Shown piece by piece: positions 16,254 through 62,833 of a stretch of 64,000 nucleotides of DNA. The stretch lies in sequence record NC_042098.1; one strand, written 5' to 3'. Position numbers and translations under genes: made by a program. Position 1 is the first letter of the stretch. Every line of letters starts with the position of its first letter. Under the pieces are notes generated by a model that saw nothing but the letters and a program-made list of their open reading frames with translations, did no database searches and was not told the origin of the DNA.

Positions 16254-16282
16254 AAGAGGGGGCTTCGGCCTCCTCTTATGCC
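16254..16282 (+). terminator. Hairpin plus TTATGCC terminator
   Basis: AAGAGGGGGC-TTCG-GCCTCCTCTT then ATGCC, right after the protease stop. Confidence 0.75.
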
Positions 16283-16346
16283 GTCTGTAAAATTTAACGG
16301 GGATTGCCCTTAGTATGTACAAAAACCCAACAGGTAGGAAACCGTC

Positions 16347-16850
16347 ATGATTGACCTTCCCCACGTGCTGGCAAAGTCGATCTTTGCTATGCATGATCTG
16401 GCGCGCTTCGTTGAACGCTATCAGAGAGCCCACAGTGCCATTGTAACGACGTATAGCAATGCAGCCATGGCTTTGGATGTCTCTGAGAAGAAAAGCCGTG
16501 ACAACGTGTTAGCGGCGCTTTTAAAGGATATCAACATTATCCTTATTGGCAACCCCGATACACAACCCTGGCCGTTGGTCGATATGAACCCGTATCACAT
16601 CGGTCTGGCGTTCCGTCATGAGATGCTGAACCTCATGATGCAGGATGACATCGGCATGGAGCAGCTTAACCTGTTCATTAACAAAGTGTACTTCCCTGCG
16701 TTGGTATTAAAAGACCTGCAGACCATTTTGTTAACGCAAGGTAAATGCCCGCTGTATGACAAAGCGGTGGTGGATGCGATGGCGGGCTTAGCGCACCAAG
16801 CGGCTTGCTTGCGAACCAACAACGCATTAGAGGTACCGAAAGATGCCTGA
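16347..16850 (+). CDS. Hypothetical protein (167 aa)
   Basis: RBS GTAGGA; ORF. Confidence 0.7.
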   Translation: MIDLPHVLAKSIFAMHDLARFVERYQRAHSAIVTTYSNAAMALDVSEKKSRDNVLAALLKDINIILIGNPDTQPWPLVDMNPYHIGLAFRHEMLNLMMQDDIGMEQLNLFINKVYFPALVLKDLQTILLTQGKCPLYDKAVVDAMAGLAHQAACLRTNNALEVPKDA

Positions 16851-17016
16851 GCAGGATTTAGCTTTACTGGTGAAAATGATCGCTGCAGGATACCAGAGGC
16901 AGATTGAGGCGGAACGCTTCAATGGCATGAGTCCGAAAACCCTGCACTTAAAAGCACTGCGTCAAGCGGCGGATGAGATGATCAACCCCGGGGTGATGGA
17001 TTCAAAAAAATCATAG
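16843..17016 (+). CDS. Small hypothetical protein (57 aa, MPEQDLALLVKMIAAG...), below track cutoff
   Basis: ATG overlaps the previous gene's end; RBS-like AGAGGT; TAG at 17014-17016. Confidence 0.55.
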   Translation: MPEQDLALLVKMIAAGYQRQIEAERFNGMSPKTLHLKALRQAADEMINPGVMDSKKS

Positions 17017-17019
17017 CCC

Positions 17020-17027
17020 TATATTAC
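17020..17027 (+). promoter_or_regulatory. Early (vRNAP) promoter motif TATATTAC
   Basis: Exact match to the phiKZ early promoter consensus, upstream of an early-type gene cluster. Confidence 0.65.
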
Positions 17028-17102
17028 CCATGTGCTTTATACACTAAGTGTAAACACTATCGATAGCCATACACAAATTAACCCGTAAAAGGAAACTGTC
17101 AC

Positions 17103-17549
17103 ATGAGCAAGACCACTACTGAAGTCAACGCAGCTACCCGTACTCTGGCCGACTCACTGAAAGCAGCAATGACCGGCGGCGAGAAAGGTAACTATGCAAC
17201 GACTGAAACCTGGTATGCAGAAAACCTGCCAGAAGGTCTGACCATCGAACAGCGTCAGAAATTCCAGGAGCATGACACCACTGTGCTGGCAGCCGCCGCA
17301 TTGGCACTCGGTGAAGTGAGCGTTCCTGCAATGAAAGAAAACGGTGACATCACCGAAGCGACTGTTGCAGTTAATGTCGGTCATGACCGTATCACCGCAT
17401 CGGTGCTGCGCGATTACACCAACGGCAAAGAACAGTATCACGGTCACGTGATTGCGGCGTATGAAGTTAACAGCGCCGGCGCGAACAGTGGCCAGCTGGG
17501 TATTGCACTGAGCACCGTGCGTTCTCTGGCCGACGAACTGCTGGGTTAA
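17103..17549 (+). CDS. Hypothetical early protein (148 aa), probably highly expressed
   Basis: RBS AAGGA; strongly biased codon usage (CTG/ACC/GGC); downstream hairpin CATGGGAAG...CTTCCCATG. Confidence 0.8.
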   Translation: MSKTTTEVNAATRTLADSLKAAMTGGEKGNYATTETWYAENLPEGLTIEQRQKFQEHDTTVLAAAALALGEVSVPAMKENGDITEATVAVNVGHDRITASVLRDYTNGKEQYHGHVIAAYEVNSAGANSGQLGIALSTVRSLADELLG

Positions 17550-17721
17550 TCACTAACCCAAACTGTAACCATGGGAAGCCTAGACACCTTCCCATGTTAA
17601 ACATCCCTGGCTGCAATACTGCAGTCATTCACTTATAAGTGCGAAGTCAACTCAAGCACCCATAAGCGAACCGAAGCATTCGAAAAATAGACAAAGTAAT
17701 CAAAGGTATGGTCCGGAAACC

Positions 17722-19194
17722 GTGCCTTTCTTTACTGTGTTTAATTCCGAACACGGTACTCACCCTCTGCATTCAGAAAGAATGCCAATTGAAAGGATAA
17801 AGTACATGAAACTTAACATCTCTGCGAACATCATCAAATCCCCACTGCATGATGAGTTTGTGATCGCTGATCGTATCCAACTTGAAACGGACAACCTGTC
17901 TATCATGCTCAATGCGGTAGACATTAACGTTCCAATCGATAACATCAATACCGGGACGTACGGTAAGTTCAGTTATGAAGGTCGTCAGAAAGAAGGCAAC
18001 TGGATGAGCTACTGGGTCAACGTGAAAGCGAAAGACCTGATTGAACTGTACCCGCATGTTCACGCGCATCAGGCAGGTGCAGTGAGCAATCAAACACCTT
18101 ACGACTTCCAACTGACTATCGGTCATGGTATCGAAGCTCACAAGTTATTTGAGCGTGACACTAATCAACCTGAAAGTCGTTACATTGAAATGTATGGAGT
18201 GGAAGCCGGTAATGACGAGTTGGCTGTACGACAGGTGCTGAGTGCGCTTGCTGGTCAGTTACTGACCACGCATCGTGCTAACGCGCATTTCGTGAACATG
18301 GTCGGTGTGCATATTGCCGAGCAACTGATCCAGTTGGGGATGACTCACTTTAAACAAGGTGATATCAAATTCAATGGATTCCTGAAAACCCACAGCGGTC
18401 TGGTTCAAACTGAACGCTTGTGGCGTTTAGGCAACCCGGGTACCAGTAAACTGTCGCTGCGTCAAACTCTGCTCACGCAACAAATCGGACCTAACTCACG
18501 CACTACACATTTGATCAATCTCGATGAACATCATGTTTACGGTATCGACGGCAAATACCAGCAGCCGAGCGGCGGCAATGGATCAGGTATGATGAACACC
18601 AATTCATTTATACCTGGTCAACAGCAACAGATGATGATGCAACCAGAAGGTTATCCAAGTCAGCAGTTTGGTTACGGTATCCCTCCGCAGCATCAAATGG
18701 GGATGAACAACAATGGTTTCATGAACAACCTGAACTACCAGCAGATGCAACCGCAGTTTGGCGAAGGGTTGCGTAAAAAGTTACCGGGTATGGCGGAGTT
18801 GAATGTGCTCCTTGGTAGAACACAAGCGGGTACTGATTTGCCTGAGTCCATGGACGGTTTACATCAGCAGGTACCTGCCGTCAACAATCGTTCTCTGGTT
18901 GAAAGTGATCTGGGTCCACGTAACGAAGATACACCGATCCGTGGTAAGGTGAAGTATATCGAAGTAGCTCCTGTCTTGATTACTGAAGATAGCGCATCAA
19001 TTGTCAACGATGGTAGCCATAACGCATATGGCGTGTATCGTCGTGAAGAACTCGGTGGCGGTAACCTTGCCGTGCATATCGGTGACTTCCTGGACGGTGG
19101 GCTCGCTGTAGCGTACGCAACCAAAATGGGTAAGTTCTTCAATGTTGATGTCGAAGACTATGTTAGTCCTGCGCCTGCAGAATATAACAAGTAA
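17722..19194 (+). CDS. Hypothetical protein (~460-490 aa) with a Q/M/N/G-rich low-complexity segment
   Basis: Long ORF; true start probably a later ATG (about 17780 or 17806). Confidence 0.75.
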   Translation: MPFFTVFNSEHGTHPLHSERMPIERIKYMKLNISANIIKSPLHDEFVIADRIQLETDNLSIMLNAVDINVPIDNINTGTYGKFSYEGRQKEGNWMSYWVNVKAKDLIELYPHVHAHQAGAVSNQTPYDFQLTIGHGIEAHKLFERDTNQPESRYIEMYGVEAGNDELAVRQVLSALAGQLLTTHRANAHFVNMVGVHIAEQLIQLGMTHFKQGDIKFNGFLKTHSGLVQTERLWRLGNPGTSKLSLRQTLLTQQIGPNSRTTHLINLDEHHVYGIDGKYQQPSGGNGSGMMNTNSFIPGQQQQMMMQPEGYPSQQFGYGIPPQHQMGMNNNGFMNNLNYQQMQPQFGEGLRKKLPGMAELNVLLGRTQAGTDLPESMDGLHQQVPAVNNRSLVESDLGPRNEDTPIRGKVKYIEVAPVLITEDSASIVNDGSHNAYGVYRREELGGGNLAVHIGDFLDGGLAVAYATKMGKFFNVDVEDYVSPAPAEYNK

Positions 19195-19219
19195 TTAGTT
19201 TCCTGATAACAATAATAAC

Positions 19220-19242
19220 GGCCCGGGGTAACACTTGGGCCG
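19220..19242 (+). terminator. Hairpin after the 490-aa gene
   Basis: GGCCCGGG-GTAACA-CTTGGGCC; further hairpins with U-tracts follow to about 19360. Confidence 0.5.
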
Positions 19243-19394
19243 AGCTGTCTTTTTCCGCCATGGGGGGTTTCTGTTCCCCCTCTTTTTTTTTATCCTAATT
19301 CACAAAGAGGTAGCCGGCAATGACCGGCTGCCCTTTCATACCACTCTTTTTTTTTTATTAAGATTACACACAGCATCCTCAATAGGTGACCATC

Positions 19395-19790
19395 ATGAAT
19401 GTTTGGACTATCCAGATCGCTCGATGGAAACTGGCTAAAGAGCGTAACATTGCTTTTCTTGATACCACTGTTAAATCTGCAAAAGAGTATGCCTTTCTGG
19501 CCCCGACCTGGAAAATGGTCATGGATCATAAACAAGGCAGTCTCTCAGATGCAGACTACACGCAACTTTACTATGAGTTGTTACGTGCTCGCTATCGTGA
19601 GAACCGACAACCTTTTTTAAAGCTGTTTCATGACTTTACTGACCAGGATATTGCCGTGGCGTGCTTTTGCACTCCCGGTCATTTTTGTCACCGTCATTTG
19701 CTTGTAGATATTCTACGCGCTATAGCCGTTAGTGAACATATACCGTTTTGCTACAAAGGTGAACTTACTTTAGGAGAACACGTCACATGA
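19395..19790 (+). CDS. DUF488-like protein
   Basis: WTIQIA...DTTVKS...FLAPTW...Y...Y...L...ACFCTPGHFCHRHLL matches the DUF488-type CxC...CHR pattern. Confidence 0.6.
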   Translation: MNVWTIQIARWKLAKERNIAFLDTTVKSAKEYAFLAPTWKMVMDHKQGSLSDADYTQLYYELLRARYRENRQPFLKLFHDFTDQDIAVACFCTPGHFCHRHLLVDILRAIAVSEHIPFCYKGELTLGEHVT

Positions 19791-20173
19791 GCGACATCAA
19801 TCAGGCGTACACACGACTACAGGGATCAACGGACTTACCCACGGGTGAATTGATTAACCCACCGAAAGGGTGCCCGGGGATTACCGCACAGGTCGTCTTA
19901 CGTCTGTTTCACAAAGTCAATGGATTGATCATTTACACGGAAGAGGTTCCAATCACTGTATTGAACATGCGGTGTTGCGAGATCTCAATGTACATGTTTA
20001 TGAACCCGGTACTGGAGCATACTGCCGCTCCGTTAACACCCAGTCTTTATATGGTTGGTAATAACGTGTTCTTAGACGTGGAAGTGCAGCTTGATCGTAT
20101 GGCCCTTTCCTCCGGGGATGTCGGTCGTTATTGTCAGGCGATGTTTTACCAGCAGTCCCTCAAGAGTAACTGA
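19787..20173 (+). CDS. Hypothetical protein (128 aa)
   Basis: RBS AGGAGA; ATGA overlap with the previous gene. Confidence 0.7.
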   Translation: MSDINQAYTRLQGSTDLPTGELINPPKGCPGITAQVVLRLFHKVNGLIIYTEEVPITVLNMRCCEISMYMFMNPVLEHTAAPLTPSLYMVGNNVFLDVEVQLDRMALSSGDVGRYCQAMFYQQSLKSN

Positions 20174-20237
20174 ATTCAAATAAATTCAGGACTATATCAC
20201 TTACGTGAGTAATAATAAGATAAAAAGGTTTTGAGCT

Positions 20238-20678
20238 ATGAGTGTAGCAGGTTCTATCTTAGCCTGGATCAATAATCAAATTGATCGGTTTGCCGACAGT
20301 CAGGAAGCCCAAGTCTGGACCGCCATTATTGTGCTGTTCTTTCTGTGCTTGCTTGTTAGTGAATTGCGCACTGTGCGACAAACCGAAAAGTTTGAAAATG
20401 GCTTACGTTTATTAATTGGGAAATACAATCTTTATTCACCAGAGGATGTCGAATCACTTAATCAACGCGGTTATGATTTGTTTGAGCTGTATGTTGAAAG
20501 CTTGACAGAATGTAACATCCCGGTCTATGACCGTGAGCGAGAAGAAGAGGAGTTTATGAAAGGCTTCTTCCACGGTTATGTGATCGGAAGACGTGTTATG
20601 GCCAAAGTGCATCCTGACCCAAGAGTTGTGGAGTGCTTTGAGAAAAAGTTTTACAAGTATCTCGGCGATATTCGTTAA
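20238..20678 (+). CDS. Hypothetical membrane protein (146 aa)
   Basis: One hydrophobic helix (VWTAIIVLFFLCLLV); preceded by TATATCAC at 20193-20200. Confidence 0.65.
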   Translation: MSVAGSILAWINNQIDRFADSQEAQVWTAIIVLFFLCLLVSELRTVRQTEKFENGLRLLIGKYNLYSPEDVESLNQRGYDLFELYVESLTECNIPVYDREREEEEFMKGFFHGYVIGRRVMAKVHPDPRVVECFEKKFYKYLGDIR

Positions 20679-20680
20679 AC

Positions 20681-20728
20681 CGGCATAAAGGCTAGCATTC
20701 CCCAACGGGAATGCTAGCCTGCTTATGC
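20681..20728. terminator. Bidirectional hairpin terminator flanked by GCATAA / TTATGC
   Basis: AGGCTAGCATTCCC-AAC-GGGAATGCTAGCCT between convergent genes. Confidence 0.8.
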
Positions 20729-20738
20729 TGCTTTTTTT

Positions 20739-21614
20739 TTATCGAGTCGGAGTGACTTGATTGTTACGGGCGTCTTCAACATCCTGCGCGTAACCGGCTT
20801 TGATAGCCTGGACGTCAGCAGTGATCTGCTTCATGCGATCTGGCAGGTCCTGCGTGTACGGGTTGGCATTCAGAGGTGCGGTGTCTTTCAGGATCTTCGC
20901 AGCCAAGTTGTCCACAGCAAGGTTCATGATGAACGTGCCGGTAAACTCGATGCTGTGTACCCAGTCCGCTGCGCCTTGTGATTTATCAAAGCGAGACTCA
21001 CGGGTACCTGAAGATTTCGGACGCATGTTCACGCCGAGGTAGGCGTTGATCACTTCCAGGCCCGTTGGGTCAGATTCCACATACAGACAGATCATGGAGA
21101 TCATATCCGGCAGCAGATCTGTCGGTGGGTTTGGATAAGTCATGATCAGTGGACGCTTAACGTCAGGGTCCATGATGAACAGACGAATCCACCACTCGAA
21201 CAACGTACCGTGCGGGAAGCCGTATTTTTCACCGATCTCATGTACTGGGACCGGCTGCTGTTGGGTGACGTTACCTGGGTCGTGCTGTTCAGCACCGGCA
21301 CCGCCGGCAGGCTGAGTGAAGTCATCAACAGTCAGTGCACGCTGGAAGCCCGTAATGGTACGGGTGTGTTTTTCCATCACTGTCTTGATGTGACCGTGCC
21401 ACAATTCAGGGTGATCCAGGTAACGAATAGCACCTGGCGTTTCGAGAACGAAACAGCGCAGTTGCTGCTGGCGGAAGCCGGCGTTATCAACGTAACGTGC
21501 GAGGTTGGCGTTGAAGCCAAAGTAACCGCCCGTGAGGGCGTTTACCATGGTTGCGTTCGTGAACGCTGCCGGACCGACGCCAGACTGGGCGACGCTATCA
21601 GTAAAACGTGGCAT
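20739..21614 (-). CDS. Tail tube protein (phiKZ gp30-like)
   Basis: 291 aa, immediately downstream of the sheath gene; beta-rich; biased codons. Confidence 0.78.
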   Translation of the reverse strand: MPRFTDSVAQSGVGPAAFTNATMVNALTGGYFGFNANLARYVDNAGFRQQQLRCFVLETPGAIRYLDHPELWHGHIKTVMEKHTRTITGFQRALTVDDFTQPAGGAGAEQHDPGNVTQQQPVPVHEIGEKYGFPHGTLFEWWIRLFIMDPDVKRPLIMTYPNPPTDLLPDMISMICLYVESDPTGLEVINAYLGVNMRPKSSGTRESRFDKSQGAADWVHSIEFTGTFIMNLAVDNLAAKILKDTAPLNANPYTQDLPDRMKQITADVQAIKAGYAQDVEDARNNQVTPTR

Positions 21615-21615
21615 A

Positions 21616-23703: not shown

Positions 23704-23905
23704 TTCTGTCTCCTTCACTATCGATAGTTGTTTGTTTGTCACTTGGGTGAAACTTAAGCTTGCCTTAATTAAGGGCTACCACATACGTCCTGATTACCCG
23801 GGAGTAGAAAGTAAATGGTATGGTTCACTATTAGCTTTAACCCTAGCAGTGCCATAGAATAAAGTGTTATTCTTAACATATTTGCCTATAGAGGGTTTTC
23901 TCCTT

Positions 23906-24868: not shown

Positions 24869-24879
24869 GCGGGGTGTGT

Positions 24880-27432: not shown

Positions 27433-27434
27433 TA

Positions 27435-29153: not shown

Positions 29154-29164
29154 CTGTAACACAT

Positions 29165-29208
29165 CAGGCCGGTGGGGGTGGCCTCACTGGTCTGGTTTCA
29201 CTTATGCG
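29165..29208 (+). terminator. Hairpin plus TTATGC between the structural gene and terminase
   Basis: CAGGCCGGTGGGG-GTGG-CCTCACTGGTCTG, then TTATGCGG. Confidence 0.5.
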
Positions 29209-29210
29209 GA

Positions 29211-31415: not shown

Positions 31416-31459
31416 CCCGCTTGTACATTGTGACATAGTTCACTAACTATATAAGGGCT

Positions 31460-31792: not shown

Positions 31793-31806
31793 CCTGAACT
31801 TGATCA

Positions 31807-31842
31807 GCATAAGGAGAGGGCAAACGCCCTCTCCTCTATGCC
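31807..31842. terminator. Bidirectional hairpin terminator flanked by GCATAA / CTATGCC
   Basis: AGGAGAGGGC-AAAC-GCCCTCTCCT between convergent genes. Confidence 0.8.
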
Positions 31843-31869
31843 GATTAAAAATCGAGTCGTGCTGATCAG

Positions 31870-32310: not shown

Positions 32311-32372
32311 GTTTAAACCTCTCTATTATAAAAAAGGAGGGCCAAAGCCCACCACATATATATTAGCCACTT

Positions 32373-37410: not shown

Positions 37411-37420
37411 GTAAAGCTAG

Positions 37421-37453
37421 GCAGGAGGGGGTAACCTCTCCTGCTCTTTATGC
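37421..37453 (+). terminator. Hairpin plus TTATGC terminator
   Basis: GCAGGAGGGG-GTAA-CCTCTCCTGC...TTATGC. Confidence 0.7.
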
Positions 37454-37755
37454 TTTTTTAATTTTTGTCAAATATAGTATTATGCAATTCTAGTAATTAA
37501 CGACACGGTAAAGTATACTTATAAGGAGAACAGGCCAGCAATGGGGGAAACCTTTAAGGATGGGGGCTTATGCTGATATATATTACAGACAGTATTAACA
37601 GTGATATATTGAGTATATCAGCATACCGATAAGTAGCCTTATAGCTGTCAATAATCATTATCTATTATAATCCAGAGAGAACACCCTCTTAGAACAAAGA
37701 TATAATAGATAATCATTAACCTGTAATCGGATAAAAAAACCGCGAAATTGAAACC

Positions 37756-37781
37756 GGGAGGCTGAAGCCTCCCTTTATGCC
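37756..37781 (+). terminator. Hairpin plus TTATGCC
   Basis: GGGAGGC-TGAA-GCCTCCC-TTTATGCC. Confidence 0.65.
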
Positions 37782-37924
37782 TGTTTAGTGTATTTTAGTA
37801 ATTCATGACTAGAGTGGCTAACAGTATGAAAGTATTTAAATCTTTCACCCGAGCTAAGGGTAACGTAGAGGTTTAGATATATGCTGATTAAATTTTAATT
37901 AAGATTAAGAGAAGGATCGTTATC

Positions 37925-38760: not shown

Positions 38761-38868
38761 TCGTCGTATATCTTATGAAATAGACTCCTTCGCCCGCCTC
38801 CTTCTTCCTGAGGGTCGTGGGTTGAAGGGTCTATGCCGATCGATATGTAATCTAATAAATTTTGTATC

Positions 38869-40187: not shown

Positions 40188-40532
40188 GGTCACAGGGGGT
40201 AGTTGGACTACCCCCTCGCCTTTATGCTCTCTTTTTTTTTGTATTTAATTACACAAGAGAGCATCGTATGTAGGTCAGTCGTGACCACCAATAGTGACAA
40301 CAACTAAATTAAGTTCACCAGTACTCTTGGCGGGGGATGTGTCAGTAACGGTACGCACCCCCGTTCCTTTTTTATACCGCACCCAAATTCCCGAACAGGT
40401 TGAGCAGATCACCCAGGTCACGTTGTCCTAGCAGCGTACTTACGGCGCCCGTCGTATCAGACACCCCCTGCGTCTAAGTTTGACCCGATCTGCTCGACCT
40501 TCCTTATCTACCACTACCCTAAGGAACCTGCT

Positions 40533-44757: not shown

Positions 44758-45492
44758 AAATCCTGGGTATTCCTCCGCTGTGAGGATGGGTAATGTGGAG
44801 TGTGGTCTGCCACGTATCGCCGCCAGGCTGTCTTGCGGAGACAAGTCTTTCCCTTTTGCAATAGGTGACCTAATGACAGGCACTGCATTAATGATCATTG
44901 AGCAACCACAACCGGAATTCAATATCCCGTTGAGGTCGCCTTATCCTGCCCTTCATGACGTAAGGTTTTCTATGTTCCCTGTTATGGGTGAGCCTGAGAA
45001 CGAAGGGTTTGAACAAGATTCAGAAACTGACGCATTACATTGAGGAGATTCAATCGCGCAGGTTCTTAACCGACTAAAGCCAGGGTGACTTGTGTTATCT
45101 TGGTAAAAGGTGAACGCGTCGTTACAGCGCATACGACTGAATGGGCCGATCCCCCCTTCGGAGTAATATTAGCCCAGATCCATTGCACACCGATAAGTCA
45201 ATGGCTAGCCAGACACACAAAAAAACTATTATGCTTCGACAGATGGTAGGTGCCTGATTACTACAATTCGATTCGATACCTCAACTAAAAGGCGGACACA
45301 AGGGCCGTTATGAGTGAAGCACCAGGAAACTATACCTTGGTAAGGCCCCAGGTTTTTTATCCTTACCAAGGTTCTCTTTCTTTTACTGCCTGATAATGGG
45401 TGGATGTCTTAGTCACCTTTCTTTCACAGAGGCAACAACCTAAGGCGTCTGCCCGCCCTATAACCCGAGTCGTCTAGCGACAAGACACCGTC

Positions 45493-45573
45493 AGACCCAT
45501 TTGGTAACAGCCTAACTTACCTGTTACCCAACCTATGACGGAAACAGGTGGTTCAACTCCACCTCTTGGGTCT
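45493..45573 (+). ncRNA. Second tRNA-like element (7-bp closing stem, 8-bp hairpin, T-arm)
   Basis: AGACCCA/TGGGTCT; GGTAACAG/CTGTTACC; AGGTGG-TTCAACT-CCACCT. Confidence 0.5.
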
Positions 45574-45649
45574 TAGGTATTGGCTTAGGCAAACTCCGTC
45601 GCGGCTTTACCCTCAATAGGCTGCGTTGCGTAAGTCAGTACCGTGCTGT

Positions 45650-45805
45650 GCGTCGTACTCCCTGATGAGGCGCCCGACGTTAAAAGGCACGAAACGGGGA
45701 CAGAGGATACTCCATCGGTGATTGCAATCAACCACGCTGGGGTTTATACAGGCACTTGAGAGACACGCTGGTTTCTCGTTGCCTGTCCCTTTGTCCCGTC
45801 GGAGT
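45650..45805 (+). ncRNA. Type I hammerhead ribozyme
   Basis: Stem I ACTCC/GGAGT; core CTGATGA (45662-68) and GAAA (45691-94); stem II closed by G-C; stem III CGGGGACAGAGG/CCTTTGTCCCG; GUC cleavage triplet at 45798-45800; loop-II CGACG pairs with upstream CGTCG. Confidence 0.82.
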
Positions 45806-46208
45806 CCCTTGCGTTCCTGGAGGGATGACACCGCGTTAAGACTGATCCCCTTAACGAAGTTGCAATAGCCGGGGGGTGTTTCTTGCAAAGGTTACTCACA
45901 GCAGACTGCCTCCGCCAATTGCGGATGGCTTAGGCCCTCAGCCCGTCAGGAAGTTGTCGTTGAATAAATGACAGCTGGACTAGGGTTGCATTATAACCCG
46001 GCAAATGTGCAGCCTGTTTTTTCTTCATGTGTACCTGAACCGGTTCAGGAGCCTACAGATGAGGGAACGACGGGAAGCATATTGCTACCGATCATTTGCT
46101 GTGTGACCGGGCCAAGGATGGCATATACCGGAACCAGTAGTCGTATTCAGCGCAGGTGCGCTTTCTCTTCCTTATCTTGTGGTTAAACCGCACCTGTCTG
46201 GATCATAT

Positions 46209-46237
46209 GTGCCGGGGTCACACCTGGCGCTTATGCC
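46209..46237 (+). terminator. Hairpin plus TTATGCC closing the non-coding locus
   Basis: GTGCCGGG-GTCACA-CCTGGCGC-TTATGCC. Confidence 0.6.
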
Positions 46238-46263
46238 GTCTGAGTTGTATCCTTTTTTACTCC

Positions 46264-46271
46264 TACATTAC
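46264..46271 (+). promoter_or_regulatory. Early promoter motif TACATTAC
   Basis: One mismatch to TATATTAC; upstream of the 46314 cluster. Confidence 0.55.
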
Positions 46272-46313
46272 GAAGCTGATATACCCATCAATTCAATTTA
46301 AAGGAGTTTAGTT

Positions 46314-47885: not shown

Positions 47886-48441
47886 CTTCGCCCATCCTGT
47901 TAACGCGGTTAATACGCAGCAACAGTTCGAGCTGTTTACGATCACTACCCTGCAGTTGCATGGCGGGAGTGTTTTCCATCGGGTGACATTGCCTTTGGAT
48001 GGACACCCTACTGAGATCGCATTGTTTGCCCAACCCACGAAGATGTCACATGTCGATGTGTTGCGCACGGTGCACGATCTGGTGTTTCTGTGGATTCCGC
48101 CAGTGACTGATCCGCGGGGGTTGATCATGGGCCATCGTGATTATATCCTCAATCTCTGTAAAGAGACCTTGCGGGTTGTTGCAGGTGTGGGTAGCTGGCC
48201 AGTCCCAGCGTTTAATAAACAGGATGTCACGGATAACGGTGTGCTTCATTTGTTGCGCTACTATGATCCGATAATGGATCGTATCATCACTCAGGTGGTT
48301 GGTACACCGCCAATGGATCTGGATGATCGGGATATGCGCCAGGATAAGCAAGGGGCAGGGCTTGTCGCCTTCTCACCCTCTTGGCTTGACCCCGGGCCTT
48401 TCACGGCACAGGATCACAACTACGGCGTTGCTGATGCATAA
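47743..48441 (+). CDS. Hypothetical protein (about 190-230 aa; start uncertain, probably near 47866)
   Basis: ORF fills the gap up to the terminator; the 5' part of the track ORF overlaps the previous gene. Confidence 0.6.
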   Translation: MTISAKMVWVFGRIPRSSCAPTRKKTTCHQTCSTRNTRGYLIVVQLSNFAHPVNAVNTQQQFELFTITTLQLHGGSVFHRVTLPLDGHPTEIALFAQPTKMSHVDVLRTVHDLVFLWIPPVTDPRGLIMGHRDYILNLCKETLRVVAGVGSWPVPAFNKQDVTDNGVLHLLRYYDPIMDRIITQVVGTPPMDLDDRDMRQDKQGAGLVAFSPSWLDPGPFTAQDHNYGVADA

Positions 48442-48444
48442 AGC

Positions 48445-48484
48445 GGCATAAGAGGAGGAGCGTTTGCTCCTCCTCTGTTTATGC
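48445..48484. terminator. Bidirectional hairpin terminator flanked by GCATAA / TTATGC
   Basis: AGAGGAGGAGC-GTTT-GCTCCTCCTCT between convergent genes. Confidence 0.8.
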
Positions 48485-48496
48485 TCTTTTTTTTTG

Positions 48497-49348: not shown

Positions 49349-49436
49349 AATCGCACCTTTGTTACATTCTACATGGATGTATGTATATATGTTGAAAAAC
49401 TGATCTCATAGAATTTAACCAACGGAGCAATATCAC

Positions 49437-50411: not shown

Positions 50412-50558
50412 TCCACTGAGCCTCTCTATTATATGTAACCGCTGCTGCAACACTCCTCTGTCTGGGTTTTCTGTATTCCTTTTACCAGAGATGAGTGAAG
50501 CGTTACATTTCTTCCGTGACCATGGCTGCTAGCGGGAGAGGCTGTTTAAAGAGCGAAT

Positions 50559-50590
50559 CCCCTCCACCGTTTTGGTGGAGGGGTTATGCC
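50559..50590 (+). terminator. Hairpin plus TTATGCC
   Basis: CCCCTCCACC-GTTTT-GGTGGAGGGG-TTATGCC; TACATTAT early-type motif follows at 50610-50617. Confidence 0.75.
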
Positions 50591-50713
50591 GTCAAAAATA
50601 ATTCAAACCTACATTATAATCACGAGCAGTACCAATTACTTTCGTACATTAACGTACTATTATTTAGGGCATAGCCCTTTTATAGTTGGATGTATGACTA
50701 GGAGCTTAACACC

Positions 50714-52711: not shown

Positions 52712-52714
52712 CCT

Positions 52715-53299: not shown

Positions 53300-53307
53300 G
53301 GTAAGAA

Positions 53308-54664: not shown

Positions 54665-54683
54665 CAGCAAAGAAGGTTTGCAC

Positions 54684-54986
54684 ATGGTTATCATCGACCG
54701 CAATCCAGAGTTTGAACATATCGTGGATGCCATCAAGCACCTGATAGACCCTGACGCGCCTGATGGTGCGTCTGTTAAAAGCATTAACGATGTTATCGAT
54801 GACCTTCGCCACCACTACCACATGCGGTCGAACATTGTTGATATGGACCCGGACATTGCAGCATTGCATGAGCCATTTTATGTGGCACTTAACAATCTCT
54901 TAATCCGGTATGGTTTTCAAGAAGACCAGATCATCAATTTCATCATCAGTGATAAGCATGCAAACTTTGTGCTTATCACAACGTAA
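54684..54986 (+). CDS. Small acidic hypothetical protein (100 aa)
   Basis: RBS GAAGG, ATG at 54684 (MVIIDRNP). Confidence 0.68.
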   Translation: MVIIDRNPEFEHIVDAIKHLIDPDAPDGASVKSINDVIDDLRHHYHMRSNIVDMDPDIAALHEPFYVALNNLLIRYGFQEDQIINFIISDKHANFVLITT

Positions 54987-54997
54987 CACTTGGGAGT

Positions 54998-55423
54998 GTG
55001 CACGTGTCAAAAAGCTATGCAGATCTCGTCAAGGGCGCGATCGTCGACTTTAATGTGGTGGCGCCAGATATCCTGGGCGAAGGGTTTACCTCATGTACGG
55101 TCAATGGTCGCTTTGATGCCGATACCGCTAACCTGCTTGGGTTGGATGTCCAGGCGAAACACCAGAACCTGTACCCGCTGGTGAAACCCCAAGGCATCCC
55201 GGATAATCCTGATAGCTACGACTTTATCAAGGTAACCAAAACCAGTGGCGCGCAAGCGATCCTGTGGCTACCCTGGATTGTCGAATCAACGATCGCCCCG
55301 GTCTCTCGTAACAAGATCAATGTGGTGATTGAAGACGTGGGATCAAAAGACATCGCTGTGGTTAAAGCCGCACTGGAGTCTAACGGTTATCTGAATGCAG
55401 TGGTTACCCTGATTGACAATTAA
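54998..55423 (+). CDS. Conserved phiKZ-like hypothetical protein (~140 aa)
   Basis: RBS GGGAG; sits just before the DNA polymerase gene; hairpin+TTATGA at 55432-55458. Confidence 0.68.
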   Translation: MHVSKSYADLVKGAIVDFNVVAPDILGEGFTSCTVNGRFDADTANLLGLDVQAKHQNLYPLVKPQGIPDNPDSYDFIKVTKTSGAQAILWLPWIVESTIAPVSRNKINVVIEDVGSKDIAVVKAALESNGYLNAVVTLIDN

Positions 55424-55548
55424 TAATAAACGCCTGTGGGTTTCCACAGGCTTTATGACCCACTTCTTTTTTTTTTGTTATCAACTATTTCCTTACATGG
55501 ATCGTCTAATCATTTAGAGAGTTAAGCCAGCGCTAAGGATATCCTGCC

Positions 55549-57660: not shown

Positions 57661-57667
57661 TCTCCGT

Positions 57668-57725
57668 CGGCATAAAGGCCTCTTAGCGGGATAACCCCCG
57701 CTAAGAGCGCCCTTTTATTTATGTG
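57668..57725. terminator. Bidirectional hairpin terminator
   Basis: GGCATAA...CTCTTAGCGGG-ATAAC-CCCGCTAAGAG...TTATGT between convergent genes. Confidence 0.72.
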
Positions 57726-58831
57726 TCTTTGCCGGTGATCATATTCTGGATATGGGTCAGCTCGTAATCGATGGTGTTCTTGACCTTGCTGGTTAAACCA
57801 CTCAGATAGAAGGTGTTGTCTGACCGGATGCGTTGAATGGCGTGCAAGATGGTGTTAAAGTTCGCGCCCTCTTTTCGCCGTTTAAACGACACCTCCAGCT
57901 CCACCAGGAAATCGATTACCCAGGTACGGGCAATGATCCACGCCCAACGGTTCTGTCGCATTTCCATGTCAATCGGTAACCGGATCGCATCATGCCCGTT
58001 TCGCCAGACAGTGGGGATATGCAGTAACACCGCTTCAAAGAACCGCTGACTGCGTTGGAGCTCCACCACAGTTCTAACAATCACCTGATCGGTGATGGCC
58101 AGTTCATCGTTGAGCCAGAAGCTTTGTCTGACATTGCGGGTTTCCCGTAAGTCATTCTCATAGCGACCGATAAAGCGATTGAAGATGGCGATGTCATTGT
58201 GGGACTTGAGCAGGTTGGGGATCGGATACTTGGTGACGAACAGATAGGGCGCGGGTGCTGTTGCGCCATCTTTGGTTTGCTCACGCAACCACATCAAGTA
58301 CTGCAGTGCTAATAAAGGAATGTTGATACTGAGTACCGCTATCCCTGAGCCGCCTAAGTCATGCTTCTTACAGAGCAAGCCGTAGTAGGTGACATTATAA
58401 GGATGGCGATGGACTTTGATCGGTTCCGCATCTTGCCAGTTATACAGCATCTCCGGTTTAAACGGTTCAGAGTTGGTGATGATGATCTCATCTACCGAGT
58501 CGTCGTAGAACTGAGAGCGCACGATGGCACCAAAGCGTGTGGCGCTGGTTAAGTTGAATTTATTACCATAGCGGTAATCCACGGCCCGTAGGTCATCGTA
58601 GTACTTTCGTACATTATCGAGAGATAATTGTGTAAGACTGCCGCCTGGTAGTGGTAACTCCTTTATGAGCTTCACCACCAGATGGTTATTCAATATGGAA
58701 TTCTCGTTTGACCGCCAATGGTTAAGCGCACGTTCCATATTGCGATGGGAAATATCGACAAGTCTTTTGTGCAGCGGCGTCAACATGCTACCGTAATTGG
58801 TAGTGACGTCAGAGGCAAATAGGTTAAGCAT
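57719..58831 (-). CDS. Conserved phiKZ-like protein (370 aa; gp52-like by synteny)
   Basis: Minus-strand gene between DNA polymerase and chimallin; RBS AGAGGT. Confidence 0.6.
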   Translation of the reverse strand: MLNLFASDVTTNYGSMLTPLHKRLVDISHRNMERALNHWRSNENSILNNHLVVKLIKELPLPGGSLTQLSLDNVRKYYDDLRAVDYRYGNKFNLTSATRFGAIVRSQFYDDSVDEIIITNSEPFKPEMLYNWQDAEPIKVHRHPYNVTYYGLLCKKHDLGGSGIAVLSINIPLLALQYLMWLREQTKDGATAPAPYLFVTKYPIPNLLKSHNDIAIFNRFIGRYENDLRETRNVRQSFWLNDELAITDQVIVRTVVELQRSQRFFEAVLLHIPTVWRNGHDAIRLPIDMEMRQNRWAWIIARTWVIDFLVELEVSFKRRKEGANFNTILHAIQRIRSDNTFYLSGLTSKVKNTIDYELTHIQNMITGKDT

Positions 58832-58976
58832 ACGACCTCTATTGACTATATGTAAAAGTGTACATGGCTCGAGTATATATTATGTAAGAGGTCACACTCT
58901 TGACTCCCTGTTCACGCAGGGGGTCGAACTGAGGGTAATGCTGCCTCAAAAGGTAAATTCAAAAAAATTACAAGTC

Positions 58977-58984
58977 TATATTAC
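58977..58984 (+). promoter_or_regulatory. Early promoter motif TATATTAC upstream of chimallin
   Basis: Exact motif; a second TATATTAT lies at 58876-58883. Confidence 0.65.
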
Positions 58985-59053
58985 GTATGTGTATAGAGTA
59001 ATCTATGCAACATTAGCTAATGTAAACTTGCAAGTAAATTAAAAGGAATCGGT

Positions 59054-61189
59054 ATGAAAACTCCTGAAGGCGAAAACAAGGCACAGGGTCAGCAGCCATC
59101 TGACCAGCAGCAGCCTAACAATTCGGCAATGGGTGATGCGCTACTACAAGCGCAACAGAGGCAGAGTCAGCAGCCACAGCAGCAGCAAACTCCGCCTCAA
59201 CAAGCGCCGCAGTCAGCACCTCAACCAGTGCAAGCAACAACCCAGCAACAGCAACACACCCCACAATTTCATCAGACTGCAGGTAACAGCACCGTGAACA
59301 ACACAACTAACAACACCAACACCGAACAACAGCAGCCGCGTCAGTCACGCATTTACGGCATGAACGAACGCCGTTCTCGTATCTTCGACGCGACCGCGTT
59401 TGGTGAAAACTTTAAGATCGCGCTGGAAGCGACCAAAGAAGTGCTGGAAGGCTACGAAGATAAAGGTTTCAACAAATCTTTCTTCCTGGTTCCTGTTGCT
59501 GACGCAACCCTGCACTGCAATGGCCTGGCGTATGCGTCTGTGTTCAACTTCGGCGGTAGCACCAAAGCGATCGTCTACACCCTGATGCTGGAAAACACCG
59601 GTTCTCCACTGAAGCCACAGCGCGGTAACGATCCACTGACGGGCGAACCGTTTGAGATCCCACGCATGACCGGTTCTCAGTACGACAACACCTACTGGGC
59701 TCGTGTAGCACAGCTGGTCGCGCACCGTGTTGGTAACAACGCAGAAGTGCTGGATGCTGGCGCCTGTGTGGTGCACGCTGAGATGAAGTGGGACGACAAG
59801 TCTGCGATCAAACAGCTGCTGAACAACGCAGAAAACGCCACCATGGCGTATGCGAACAGCCTGTCTGGTTACCGTATCGAACCACCATTCAACATCGCGC
59901 AGGAAGTGGACCCGAACATCGACCGCATCACCGCGGGCTTTAACTTCAATCCACAGCCGCTGTTCACTGTTGATGGTCAGCCGATCCGTAACGACGTCGA
60001 AGTGAAACTGTCTGCTTACGCAGAAGGCGCAGGCCAGGTTCAGACCACCGAAGCCATCACCACCGTGAACGGCTATGTTGAGCTGATCGCTGCACCACAG
60101 CAGCAGATGGGTTATCAGCAGCAGATGATGATGGGTATGAACCCGCAGCAGGCGATGCAGTTCTACCGTCGCTTCTACCCGCAGTTCACCATCACTTCAA
60201 CTGGTACCGGTATCTCTAACGCACAGGGTCCTGAGTTCCAGCTGCTGGCGCTGTTCGCTGCTTCACTGATTGGTGAAAACAGCAACTGGCACCATGCGTT
60301 TGCGCCGAAGATGGTAAACGGTGTCGATATCAACGATATCGGTGCGATCAACTACGAACTGAAAATGGGTCTGGAAAGCCCAGATGACCGTCCGAAGAAG
60401 ATCATCACCAAAGACCACAGCTTCACCACGCAGGCTCTGCATCAGCTGCTGTACACCGCATGCCACGAATCCATGTCAATCGCGATCGACATCGAAGAGA
60501 CCGGCACGCGTACCTGGGTTAACTCCATGCTGCTTCTGGCTGGCGGTCAACCAAACGGTAATGCTGCAGCACTGAGCCCACAGGGTCAGCAGGCGCACAA
60601 AGCGATCATCCAGGCGGCGAACAACCTGACCAACGGTGAGTTCAGCAAACACTTCACCGATCAGAACCAGCTGATTGCTGTACGTGACGGTACCCGTATT
60701 CAGGGTGGTTTCTACGTCTCTAAAGACAACCATCAGAAAATGGATATCCGTAACGTCGACCTGCTGGCGGTTCTGAACTTCGTCGGTGAAACTGATCCGC
60801 GCATCGTGGAAGAGTGGAAAATCATCACCAGCTCTACTTCTGGTATGTCTACTCCGAAACGTGTCGCGCTGCGTCAGCAGAAACTGCAGCAGCTGCTGGG
60901 TGAGTCTTTCGTCCTGAAAGCTTACTACGAGCGTGTAGTGATCAACTGGGCATTCATGGATGCTCTGCGTAAAGCAATCACTGCAGCAGGCCTGATCGTG
61001 CGTCCGGAAAACACCAACATGCAGTACAACGTACAGAGCTACGGCACACCAATGGCGCAGCTGTACGGCATGCCTACCAACATCGGCAGCTCACTGCAGC
61101 AGGGCGCTTACGCAACCGACAACCAAGGTCGCGTAGTGAACATGGCAGCGTTCCGTACTGGTGGTGCATTCGGTACGTTCAACGGCTAA
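59054..61189 (+). CDS. chmA: Chimallin (ChmA), major nuclear shell protein
   Basis: 711 aa with strongly biased codons, directly upstream of nvRNAP beta' as in phiKZ gp54/gp55. Fold-typical stretches (VYTLMLE...P, YPQFTIT, LLALFAA, GPEFQLL) and an aromatic/Gly C-terminal tail. Confidence 0.85.
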   Translation: MKTPEGENKAQGQQPSDQQQPNNSAMGDALLQAQQRQSQQPQQQQTPPQQAPQSAPQPVQATTQQQQHTPQFHQTAGNSTVNNTTNNTNTEQQQPRQSRIYGMNERRSRIFDATAFGENFKIALEATKEVLEGYEDKGFNKSFFLVPVADATLHCNGLAYASVFNFGGSTKAIVYTLMLENTGSPLKPQRGNDPLTGEPFEIPRMTGSQYDNTYWARVAQLVAHRVGNNAEVLDAGACVVHAEMKWDDKSAIKQLLNNAENATMAYANSLSGYRIEPPFNIAQEVDPNIDRITAGFNFNPQPLFTVDGQPIRNDVEVKLSAYAEGAGQVQTTEAITTVNGYVELIAAPQQQMGYQQQMMMGMNPQQAMQFYRRFYPQFTITSTGTGISNAQGPEFQLLALFAASLIGENSNWHHAFAPKMVNGVDINDIGAINYELKMGLESPDDRPKKIITKDHSFTTQALHQLLYTACHESMSIAIDIEETGTRTWVNSMLLLAGGQPNGNAAALSPQGQQAHKAIIQAANNLTNGEFSKHFTDQNQLIAVRDGTRIQGGFYVSKDNHQKMDIRNVDLLAVLNFVGETDPRIVEEWKIITSSTSGMSTPKRVALRQQKLQQLLGESFVLKAYYERVVINWAFMDALRKAITAAGLIVRPENTNMQYNVQSYGTPMAQLYGMPTNIGSSLQQGAYATDNQGRVVNMAAFRTGGAFGTFNG

Positions 61190-61220
61190 TCCGGCGTTGT
61201 AAGCAAGCAGTAACATGAAC

Positions 61221-61254
61221 GGGTAGGCGGGAAACCGCCTACCTTGTTTATGCC
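61221..61254 (+). terminator. Hairpin plus TTATGCC
   Basis: GGTAGGCGG-GAAA-CCGCCTACC...TTATGCC. Confidence 0.78.
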
Positions 61255-61294
61255 CACTTTATTTTTTAGTAGTACGTAAAAAGGAAAACCGGTA

Positions 61295-62782
61295 ATGATG
61301 CATGAAATGCAAGCAGCGCAACCGGCACTCGTGCAAGAAGGTGGTTTGACAGCGGTTGTGGGAAACCATGACCAACACTTCTTCATGTTGTCGCGTCCAC
61401 CCATCATTGCTAACGACTATGACCTCTCGATCGAAGCTGACCGACAAGCCCTGAATAACCATCTGCGGGTGAGTTATGATACGGACATGTTCAGTGTCAA
61501 GCCGAAGTGTCAGTGTGGACATACCAGCGGCGGTGATAAAGTTGGAAAGCTGTGTGTAAAGTGCGGCACGAAGGTCACTACCGTAACCGAAGAAGAGATT
61601 GAGTCTCAGCTCTGGTTACGCAAGCCTGAAGGTGTAAAGGGCTTCATTAACCCACAGTTATGGTTATTGTTCTTTGAACCGTTTAATGTCAAAGGGTTCA
61701 ATCCAATGGAGTGGTTTGCAGACCGTTCCTATACTCCAGCCAAGGGGGGTATGGATTACAAGAACAAAGATGTGTACAAAGTCTGCGCGGACATGGGTAT
61801 CGAACGAGGCATAAACTCCTTGTACGATAACTTTGACGCTATCGTAACAAACCTACTTAACTCTCCGGTCGTGCGTGATCAGGTCACGTCACAAGAAGTG
61901 CTGCGTCAACGTTCTGATTTGTTTATTAAATACCGTGATCGTTTCTTCTGTGAACACTTACCGATGCCCTCCAAGCTGATGTTTGTGGTGGAATCCAATG
62001 CAACCGGTCGCTATGCTGCCCCTGAGATGAAACTGGCTCTGGATGCAGCGTTAACCGTCTGTTCAGCAAAACGCCAACTGCATACGGTGCGGGATGTGCG
62101 CTTTAATGAAAGCATTGCGATTAAAGTGGTCCGTCAGATCTCGAAGTTCTATGCGACACATGACAGTGACAACTTTGCGGGTAAGTTAGGGTTACTGCGT
62201 AAGAACATTGCTGGGGCAAAACATCCGTGGACCGGTCGTTGTGTGATTACCTCGCACACGGGCGACCATGACATGGATGAAGTGATCCTACCACGTTGTT
62301 TGGCGATCCCGATGTTGAAATACCACATCATCAACAAACTGCGTCGTCGGAACTACACCCCAACACAATGCCTCAAACTGATCCAGGCGGGTATTAAGCA
62401 AACCATCCCAGTGATCGATGAGGTGTTAGATGAACTCCTCGCAGAAAGCCCTACAGCGTCGATACGGGTATATGTGCAACGAAACCCAACCCTGCGTTGG
62501 TTATCGAACCGCCGGTTCCATTGCCGAACCATCAACCGTGATCCAAATGACATCAGTATCCGTATCAGTACCTTATCTATCAAATCCTCGAATGCGGACT
62601 TTGATGGCGATGAACTGAACGTGATGTTACAACTGGATAACGTCTCAGCGAACTATGCGGAAGCGTTCGGTTCACACAACTGTGTGCTGGACATGAACAC
62701 CCCGCTGAAGATCTCTGGTGACGTGGGCCTGCCGGGTACATTGATCTCGACCATGAACCGTTGGATGTACAGTAACGACTAA
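61295..62782 (+). CDS. Non-virion RNA polymerase beta' N-terminal/catalytic subunit (phiKZ gp55-56.1-like)
   Basis: Zn finger CQCGH...CVKC, GKLGLLRKNIAG...GRCVIT, QRNPTL, catalytic NADFDGD. Confidence 0.92.
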   Translation: MMHEMQAAQPALVQEGGLTAVVGNHDQHFFMLSRPPIIANDYDLSIEADRQALNNHLRVSYDTDMFSVKPKCQCGHTSGGDKVGKLCVKCGTKVTTVTEEEIESQLWLRKPEGVKGFINPQLWLLFFEPFNVKGFNPMEWFADRSYTPAKGGMDYKNKDVYKVCADMGIERGINSLYDNFDAIVTNLLNSPVVRDQVTSQEVLRQRSDLFIKYRDRFFCEHLPMPSKLMFVVESNATGRYAAPEMKLALDAALTVCSAKRQLHTVRDVRFNESIAIKVVRQISKFYATHDSDNFAGKLGLLRKNIAGAKHPWTGRCVITSHTGDHDMDEVILPRCLAIPMLKYHIINKLRRRNYTPTQCLKLIQAGIKQTIPVIDEVLDELLAESPTASIRVYVQRNPTLRWLSNRRFHCRTINRDPNDISIRISTLSIKSSNADFDGDELNVMLQLDNVSANYAEAFGSHNCVLDMNTPLKISGDVGLPGTLISTMNRWMYSND

Positions 62783-62833
62783 ACTTATGGCCAGGGGTAA
62801 TTCCCTGGCCTTATTACCGACGGGATATTTTTT

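Follow-up and report, generated by a model that had tools for sequence, protein, structure and literature searches.

Hairpin-TTATGCC elements behind the genes of an Agricanvirus as probable transcription terminators of the phiKZ type

Transcript ends have been mapped by ONT-cappable-seq in the phages phiKZ and 201phi2-1, and in both of them a GC-rich hairpin followed by a short motif has been described at such ends. The 61 phiKZ terminators found by ONT-cappable-seq yielded the motif 5'-BCCYCCCCHWWDGGGRRGGBYTTATKYYGT-3' (Putzeys et al. 2024, microLife, PMC10914365), and the phiKZ sites count as intrinsic terminators according to ARNold. For 201phi2-1, motif A (n = 59) was found to 'strongly resemble' the phiKZ motif, and the authors consider the two to be of the same motif family (Microb Biotechnol 2024, PMC11512511). 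Here, we analyse elements of this kind in a stretch of 64,000 nucleotides (nt) from record NC_042098.1, called the window below, which is identical to bases 124001-188000 of the Erwinia phage vB_EamM_Desertfox (MG655268.1, 272,458 bp, Agricanvirus). Desertfox is a nucleus-forming, phiKZ-related jumbo phage with an Erwinia host and a genome of 50% GC. A preliminary description of the window had presented hairpins followed by (T/C)TATGC as a phage-specific terminator grammar. As a discovery this does not stand, since the motif was already published for phiKZ (Putzeys 2024) and for 201phi2-1 (2024); what is new is the Agricanvirus instance and the distribution of the motif.

To relate the motif to RNA ends, the 85 published coordinates of phiKZ transcription termination sites (TTS; Table S4 of the Putzeys bioRxiv preprint) were placed on the phiKZ genome. 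A hairpin with TTAT within 9 nt was found at 40 of the 85, and in 36 of these 40 the TTS lies 1-6 nt past the first T. At the TTATG sites the offset has its mode at 6. The ends are commonest 2-3 nt past the G, with a subset exactly on the T before the G. When all hairpin-linked TTS are taken together, most of them are 2-8 nt away from the last base of the stem, and phiKZ uses TTATT about as often as TTATG. The 201phi2-1 TTS at 84756, 132419, 179552 and 229201 each coincide with base 8 of a YTTATGYYG match (4/4), the same offset as in phiKZ. The preliminary description would have been refuted by 3' ends lying elsewhere; in these two phages this has in effect been checked, and the ends map to the motif.

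The Desertfox elements resemble those of phiKZ in several respects. In both phages a GC-rich tetraloop hairpin is directly followed by (Y)TTAT-K-YY-G(T), and the Desertfox sequence TTATGCCGT fits the IUPAC string of phiKZ. The sites stand behind genes, they are bidirectional at convergent pairs with ACATAA or GCATAA on the far side, and a T10 run follows some copies (phiKZ T034). Both phages also have split multisubunit RNA polymerases. In Desertfox, gp2 is a homologue of phiKZ gp123, a subunit of the non-virion RNA polymerase (nvRNAP; 26% identity, E = 3e-52), gp164/165, gp249/250 and gp272 are annotated as RNA polymerase subunits, and gp223, which lies in the window, has a Pfam RNA_pol_Rpb1_2 match and homologues in 309 jumbo-phage records including phiKZ. 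There are also differences. Desertfox fixes the G and the CC (TTATGCC), while phiKZ allows G/T and C/T, and the stem polarity is reversed, the 5' arm being pyrimidine-rich in the phiKZ logo and purine-rich in Desertfox. Genus and host are different as well, and the ends were mapped by RNA in phiKZ, whereas those of Desertfox are predicted from sequence. With motif A and A/B of 201phi2-1 the elements have in common that the stems are longer where an upstream half-site is present, comparable to the bidirectional GCATAA...TTATGC sites of Desertfox. The 201phi2-1 terminators differ in that they have been shown to function in vivo with the host polymerase, while the Desertfox sites are read from the genome.

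Placement, consensus and conservation of the element

The preliminary description had listed 14 hairpins on the plus strand of the window, each followed by a YTATGC-like motif, and all of them were found. The hexamer is present at the listed position in 14/14 cases, each with a stable upstream hairpin that ends 0-7 nt before the motif and has a predicted RNA folding free energy (dG) of -14.6 to -26.9 kcal/mol; with both strands taken together, the sites of the window fold at -14.6 to -28.3 kcal/mol. Against shuffled sequences the hairpins have z-scores of -2.8 to -7.9, with the exception of that at 46231 (z -1.1). Two of the listed sites carry variants, TTATGA at 55453 and TTATGT at 57719, the latter 7-11 nt from the stem. 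The minus-strand copies that had been claimed for four convergent junctions are likewise there, with the sense motif at 20688, 31812, 48451 (second copy at 48441) and 57675.

In a strand-blind scan of the window, YTATG lies within 12 nt 3' of a GC hairpin in 13/44 intergenic cases compared to 3/226 coding ones. The plain hexamer TTATGC is not enriched, with 38 copies on both strands of the window against ca 31 expected; the signal comes entirely from the association with hairpins and gene ends.

For the genome-wide analysis, the whole Desertfox genome was rebuilt from seven pieces and genes were called by open reading frame (ORF) within the annotated strand blocks; within the window, 59 of 63 stop codons are common to these calls and the annotation. 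YTATG follows 46 of the 107 hairpins found behind stop codons, compared to 31 of 863 hairpins in coding sequence (Fisher p = 1e-28), and for TATGCC the corresponding numbers are 31/107 and 6/863 (p = 4e-26). Such a difference indicates that the linkage between hairpin and motif is not due to chance. An unbiased count of the k-mers in the 14 nt 3' of hairpins also ranks TATGCC, ATGCCG and TTATGC at the top.

The preliminary description had called for a genome-wide count with strand polarity, and the outcome is clear: the intergenic hairpin+TATG sites comprise 57 in sense and 11 in antisense orientation. The sense sites are divided into 30 at tandem and 27 at convergent junctions, with none at divergent ones. 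Four sites of the window (29202, 40222, 46231 and 50584) are absent from the 57, as they lie inside over-extended or extra ORFs. The motif is two-sided at 11 of the 18 convergent junctions, and all 18 divergent junctions are devoid of it. It had also been stated that tandem junctions carry the sense copy only. This holds within the window, but elsewhere at least four tandem junctions have both copies (hairpins near 5.4, 58.0, 81.7 and 271.5 kb), and a fifth antisense copy is found at 11.3 kb.

The 57 sense sites are quite uniform in their anatomy. The hairpin starts at a median of 9 nt past the stop codon, the stems have 6-16 bp, and the loop has 4 nt in 45/57 cases, UUCG and GAAA being the commonest. 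TATG is offset from the stem by -2 to +5 nt in 56/57 sites. The consensus is T(-1) in 48/57, TATG, C in 50/57, C in 44/57 and G in 39/57, that is, TTATGCCG; position +4 is C or T in 53/57, position +5 is C or T in 56/57, position +6 is G in 39/57, and the final T is weak (17/57). The 5' arm is purine-rich in 25 of 30 unidirectional hairpins, and a GGAGRGG theme is common among the stems. In spite of this theme, 53 distinct hairpin sequences are found among the 57 sites.

Next, the Desertfox sites were compared with the whole genome of Erwinia phage AH06 (ca 84% identical), in which 33 orthologous sites could be aligned. Substitutions amount to 3% in the motif, 10% in the stem and 30% in the loop, compared to 23% in the 20 nt downstream and 17% in the 20 nt upstream, and 15 stem pairs are preserved by changes on both sides. 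The 14-bp hairpin at 20689-20720, for example, has three compensatory pairs, with TTATGC unaltered on both strands. The motif is thus under purifying selection and the stems undergo compensatory changes.

We have also compared the folding of the two strands, using fixed 41-nt windows before the unidirectional motifs. Among the 47 sites tested, 45 of which differ between the strands, the sense RNA folds better in 32 and the antisense RNA in 13 (p = 0.002). A version of this test with hairpins searched strand by strand gave 25 vs 3, but that result is biased by the way the sites were found, and the fixed-window version is the one to be trusted. The better sense fold indicates that the structure matters in RNA, since G-U pairs yield such an asymmetry.

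Mechanism and alternative explanations

On this basis we consider it likely that these Agricanvirus sites are hairpin-dependent transcription terminators of the phiKZ type. Anatomy, placement, strand polarity, selection on the motif, compensation in the stems and the match in kind to the elements of phiKZ and 201phi2-1 are observed here, and 3' ends would form at the Desertfox sites by analogy with the mapped ones. The suggestion in the preliminary description of a termination or 3'-end signal is in this sense well supported, by position, by selection and by the likeness to mapped ends in the other two phages.

In the mechanism that we propose, a GC-rich RNA hairpin, mostly with a 4-nt loop that is often UUCG or GNRA and mostly with a purine-rich 5' arm, would form in the nascent transcript a few bases past the stop codon. 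The polymerase would then transcribe TTATGCC and release the RNA, with the 3' end inside or just past UUAUG(YY), directly before the conserved G. At convergent pairs, a single palindromic hairpin between GCATAA and TTATGC would serve both directions. Termination would most likely be factor-independent and driven by the hairpin, with TTATGCC in place of a long U-tract. UUAU as a short U-rich hybrid, a pause step at the pyrimidine/G boundary and a GC-rich downstream duplex could jointly take over the function of the U-tract, and the CCG would make the downstream duplex harder to open. The consensus elemental pause of multisubunit RNA polymerases is reportedly G-10 Y-1 G+1, which is attributed to work by Larson and by Vvedenskaya in 2014. 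The candidate ends UUAU|G and UUAUGCC|G are similar to it in that both have a pyrimidine at the 3' end followed by G, while the G at -10 is not conserved in the Desertfox motif.

With the canonical intrinsic terminator, that is, a GC hairpin with a U-tract of 7-9 nt, the elements share the dependence on a hairpin, the sense orientation and the position just past stop codons, and in the phiKZ data also RNA ends at 2-8 nt from the stem and the intrinsic label given by ARNold. They differ in the tail, which is UUAUGCC rather than U7-9 and contains a specific G-C-C-G that is conserved and selected for. A U-tract of ca 7-9 nt directly after the stem is not what is found: an adjacent T-tract occurs at 1 of 53 TATG-bearing post-stop hairpins, and at 10 hairpins that have no TATG. 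The wording 'instead of poly-U' in the preliminary description can thus be retained in part. The tail is indeed not U7-9, but TTAT is itself a short U-rich tract, ARNold considers such sites intrinsic, and ca 17 Desertfox terminators have a T9-10 run.

The T-runs themselves deserve a comment. Runs of at least 8 T number 19 on the plus strand of the Desertfox genome and 2 on the minus strand. All those on the plus strand are intergenic and lie 1-16 nt past a terminator hairpin, one of them inside a block of minus-strand genes, and a frequent arrangement is hairpin-TTATGC-N3-8-C-T9-10-G/A. In the window, T9-T10 runs are found at 19283-19291, 19347-19356, 20732-20740, 40232-40240, 48487-48495 and 55467-55476. 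The same strand bias is seen in AH06 (21:2), phiKZ (15:3), PCH45 (11:0) and SA002 (8:0). At T034 of phiKZ the mapped RNA end precedes the T-run. The run may act as a back-up stop that serves a second polymerase.

A number of points weigh against the assignment as hairpin-dependent terminators. About 40 post-stop hairpins in Desertfox have neither TATG nor a T-run. For an RNA that ends at UUAUGCC, the last 7 pairs of the hybrid include three G/C pairs, whereas textbook intrinsic termination relies on a weak hybrid, and the proposed mechanism is therefore incomplete. The 3' ends from ONT-cappable-seq are accurate to ca 2 nt and may have arisen by processing, so that even the phiKZ data do not distinguish this from termination. 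Finally, among 24 sequencing runs listed by a search, 20 have the DNA of this phage (as contigs) and none is recorded as RNA. Our search of the literature on Agricanvirus likewise found no RNA data or transcription study; in the Agricanvirus genome paper MEME was run, and no motif was taken further.

We now turn to the question of which polymerase the signal addresses. The preliminary description suggested that it is specific to the phage RNA polymerases. This is partly contradicted by the 201phi2-1 data, as the four motif-bearing terminators with the TTS given above, placed between two reporters in uninfected P. chlororaphis, gave termination equal to or better than that of lambda T0 (PMC11512511), which means that the host enzyme responds to them. 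The signal may still be tuned to the phage polymerases, since the motif follows the phage lineage rather than the host.

This was seen when the same k-mer test of hairpin tails was applied to other genomes, comparing observed and expected numbers of TTATG after hairpins. The motif is enriched in phiKZ (72 observed vs 9 expected), AH06 (58 vs 3), Salmonella phage SA002 (17 vs 1), Xanthomonas phage RTH11, which has 58% GC (26 vs 1.2), 201phi2-1 (14 vs 0.9) and Ralstonia phage RSF1 (12 vs 0.9), and weakly in Serratia phage PCH45 (5 vs 0.7). No enrichment of TTATG was found in Seoulvirus SPFM4, Derbicusvirus EarlPhillipIV, Vibrio phage phiKT1028 (Tidunavirus) and Bacillus phage PBS1, in which tails of the TTATT and TTTAT types dominate, nor in the controls, 280 kb of E. 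coli K-12 (9 vs 5.5 expected) and T4 (5 vs 2.3). The terminator hairpins of the Seoulvirus, Derbicusvirus and Vibrio Tidunavirus phages have TTATT, TTTAT or TATTT behind the stem, which indicates that TTAT is the common core across chimalliviruses and that the G-YY-G extension is limited to certain lineages. As the tail is kept across several hosts and from 37 to 58% GC, and is absent from T4 and E. coli, it follows the phage transcription machinery and not the host.

A first alternative, which would refine the terminator explanation rather than replace it, is that the non-template TATG is sensed by the pocket in the beta-lobe of the nvRNAP (gp123 in phiKZ, gp2 in Desertfox) that reads the TATG of late promoters, and that the resulting pause in elongation lets the hairpin release the RNA. 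The signal would then be truly tuned to the phage enzyme. The late promoter of phiKZ is TATG with +1 at the G, every base being needed (PMC4666361), and in a cryo-electron microscopy structure (2026) the non-template T-3 A-2 T-1 G+1 is buried in a pocket of gp123 (PMC12809450). These are the same four bases as in the terminator tail, and the Desertfox homologue gp2 retains most of the pocket residues (S144, F151, K158, K190, H331, S334 and Q466), as well as aromatic or imidazole side chains at the stacking positions 185, 399 and 406. Seoulvirus and Derbicusvirus, which have TTATT-type terminators, have lost 144, 158, 185, 334 and 399. In addition, T(-1) and CC are 77-88% conserved, the G of TATG being invariant by the way the sites were selected, and some phiKZ TTS lie exactly on the T before the G. 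Several facts do not agree with this proposal, however. RNA ends map most often 2-3 nt past the G and not at T|G, the motif-bearing terminators of 201phi2-1 function with the host polymerase, phiKZ has TTATT as often as TTATG, and the Vibrio phage phiKT1028 retains most of the pocket residues, yet has TTATT terminators. Sites are also found behind apparently early genes, which are the expected targets of the virion polymerase, and the residue comparison, which covers 11 phages, is suggestive but confounded by phylogeny. We therefore regard a role of the pocket as unlikely. If it were true, one pocket of a sigma-less phage polymerase would serve both for the start and, behind a hairpin, for the pause or stop, and the split between TTATG and TTATT among chimallivirus lineages would be a co-evolution of terminator tails with the pocket.

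Another option considered was that the polymerase reads through and the RNA is then cut or trimmed, hairpin and UUAUGCC being a 3'-end mark for processing, stability or nuclear export that a protein of the phage or the host would recognise. In support of this, the motif is located in the RNA and strand-specific, export of mRNA is obligatory for nucleus-forming phages, the mapped phiKZ ends are possibly processed ends, and conservation beyond the U-tract suggests a reader other than thermodynamics. Nevertheless, the 201phi2-1 terminators cloned in reporters reduce downstream expression in uninfected P. chlororaphis, which points to termination or at least a block in cis with no need for phage factors. 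For ChmC, the nucleus-associated RNA-binding protein that is known, enhanced crosslinking and immunoprecipitation (eCLIP) gave sites close to start codons and no motif, and the conserved G lies at or beyond the mapped end. Such a tag is in our view quite improbable.

We have also examined the possibility of a terminator-promoter cassette, in which the upstream transcript ends at the hairpin and the TATG directly following would act as a late-type start for the next gene. In its favour, TATG is the late-promoter consensus of phiKZ (Yakunina 2015; Chen et al. 2026), the next start codon is 20-25 nt downstream of several Desertfox sites (for example at genome positions 20527, 47078 and 191041), and P049 of phiKZ starts at a second TATG 10 nt past a terminator hairpin. 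However, promoters are required at divergent junctions, and this is where start sites would be expected; on both strands of a convergent junction, a start would produce antisense RNA only. The distribution is the opposite, with the motif on both strands at 11/18 convergent junctions and no site at the 18 divergent ones. The phiKZ late promoter has no hairpin in front of it: in none of 59 mapped phiKZ transcription start sites does a hairpin end within 8 nt upstream, noting that a few rows of this table, derived from a PDF of the bioRxiv supplement, are apparently shifted against the coordinates. The conserved CCG extension is also outside the promoter logo. The promoter reading of the whole element was consequently rejected, and the combined cassette is very improbable. 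A de novo search for late promoters in 28 divergent upstream regions gave TATG in roughly every second one, and in AT-rich spacers such a frequency does not clearly exceed what chance would give.

Finally, a DNA-level element, such as a dispersed palindromic repeat, be it mobile or like the repetitive extragenic palindromic (REP) sequences, or a site for protein binding or replication that is intergenic by happenstance, is hardly credible: some bidirectional hairpins are nearly identical and the stems share the GGAGRGG theme, but 53 of 57 hairpins differ in sequence, so that they do not behave as a dispersed repeat, the 33 sites alignable in AH06 are at orthologous positions with compensatory changes in the stems, G-U pairs favour the sense RNA fold, and the orientation follows the gene strand.

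Individual sites in the window and neighbouring features

The putative terminators of the window are as follows. Behind gp171 (16254..16285, plus strand), the hairpin 16254-16277 with a UUCG loop is followed by TTATGCCGTC (dG -19.6 kcal/mol). The bidirectional site between gp178 and gp179 consists of the 14-bp hairpin, with TTATGC at 20723 and the T9 run 20732-20740 on the plus side (20689..20740; dG -26.9 kcal/mol), while on the minus strand the same hairpin and TTATGCCG (20688 to 20681) end gp179 (20681..20720; dG -28.2 kcal/mol). The site after gp183 (29163..29207, plus) has a G-U-rich hairpin at 29163-29196, a 5-nt gap and TTATGC (dG -25.8 kcal/mol), and the start of the terminase gene is 18 nt downstream. 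Between gp185 and gp186, one hairpin is followed by CTATGCCG on the plus side (31812..31843) and by TTATGCTG on the minus side (31805..31836), where it ends gp186.

Further along the plus strand, a hairpin with a GUAA loop, TTATGC and then a T-rich tail stand after gp191 (37420..37453), and the hairpin 37756-37773 with TTATGCC (37756..37782) closes a stretch of ca 300 nt that is devoid of ORFs. After gp193 (38786..38838), a long imperfect hairpin (38786-38829) precedes CTATGCCG (dG -25.8 kcal/mol, z -5.9), and after gp196 (40194..40240) the hairpin 40194-40216 is followed by TTATGC at 40222 and the T9 run 40232-40240. At 46209..46240 (plus), a hairpin with G-U pairs and TTATGCCGTC is located 23 nt after an unannotated ORF of 72 amino acids.

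The bidirectional site between gp208 and gp209 has, on the plus side (48451..48495), the hairpin, TTATGC at 48479 and the T9 run 48487-48495, and on the minus side (48436..48476) the same hairpin with TTATGCCG (48451 to 48444) and a second TTATGC (48441 to 48436). Upstream of gp211 (50559..50593, plus) we find the hairpin 50559-50583 and TTATGCCGTC, and after gp219 (55432..55476, plus) a hairpin with the variant TTATGA and the T10 run 55467-55476. The hairpin between gp220 and gp221 is followed by the weak variant TTTTATTTATGT on the plus side (57680..57724) and by TTATGCCG on the minus side (57668..57707), which ends gp221. Behind gp222 and before the RNA polymerase subunit gene gp223 (61221..61255, plus), a hairpin with a GAAA loop and TTATGCCC is unchanged in AH06. 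An extra site that was not in the earlier list lies after gp223 (62789..62819, plus), a hairpin with the variant TTATTACCG (dG -17.7 kcal/mol). A minority type of terminator, with poly-T, is represented at 19262..19356 (plus), where two hairpins are followed by the T9 and T10 runs 19283-19291 and 19347-19356, with no TATG.

Some bidirectional hairpins belong to families of near-identical sequences. The first, GGAGAGGGC-GTTT/AAAC-GCCCTCTCC, is found at four junctions and the second, AGAGGAGGAGC-AAAC/GTTT-GCTCCTCCTCT, at three. Their members are 31812-31835 and 48451-48476 of the window, and those at 27.5, 119.6 and 253.0 kb and at 6.0 and 96.4 kb of Desertfox.

The ORF that precedes the site at 46209 lies in an unannotated gap of 1.27 kb (45044-46313). 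It starts with ATG, covers 45968-46186 on the plus strand with 72 amino acids, ends 23 nt before the hairpin, and is probably an unannotated gene. The remainder of the gap has short ORFs only.

A sequence similar to the early-promoter core of phiKZ, TATATTAC, was also noted. Its form in Desertfox, (C)CTAYATTAY, occurs 18 times in plus-strand intergenic DNA, which makes up 7.8% of the genome, 12 times in plus-strand coding sequence and 2+2 times on the minus strand; the version CCTAYATTAC is intergenic and plus-strand-specific. The copies in the window are at 17020, 34732, 37579, 38869, 58876 and 58977. Several copies are situated 20-26 nt past the TATG of a terminator, giving terminator-promoter cassettes. 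In the ca 300 nt bracketed by the terminators at 37448 and 37775, the early-promoter-like TATATTAC is at 37579 and no plus-strand ORF exceeds 20 amino acids. The part from 37590 to 37780 folds at -43 kcal/mol (z = -4.0), a long AU-rich inverted repeat being part of the fold, and the stretch 37448-37780 is a candidate for a small non-coding RNA with no Rfam match. Rfam (at the gathering threshold) and ARAGORN gave no matches anywhere in the window.

Signals of the host type are at background level. Matches to sigma-70-type promoters are at chance between 36001 and 56000 of the window (25 vs 24.6 in shuffles), which fits a transcription that is independent of the host polymerase, and sites with a hairpin and a T-tail of the host type are at the level of shuffled sequence in the window (22 vs 17.2 expected).

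Implications

TTATG-YY-G is kept behind hairpins in phages of Pseudomonas, Erwinia, Salmonella, Xanthomonas and Ralstonia, at GC contents from 37 to 58%. A tail that tracks the phage lineage in this way raises the question of whether the split phage RNA polymerases read sequence at termination. In practical terms, the motif is a simple and reliable marker of transcript ends in Agricanvirus and related jumbo phages for which there is no transcriptome, and its use in the window has already drawn attention to a small ORF missing from the annotation and to a possible small RNA.

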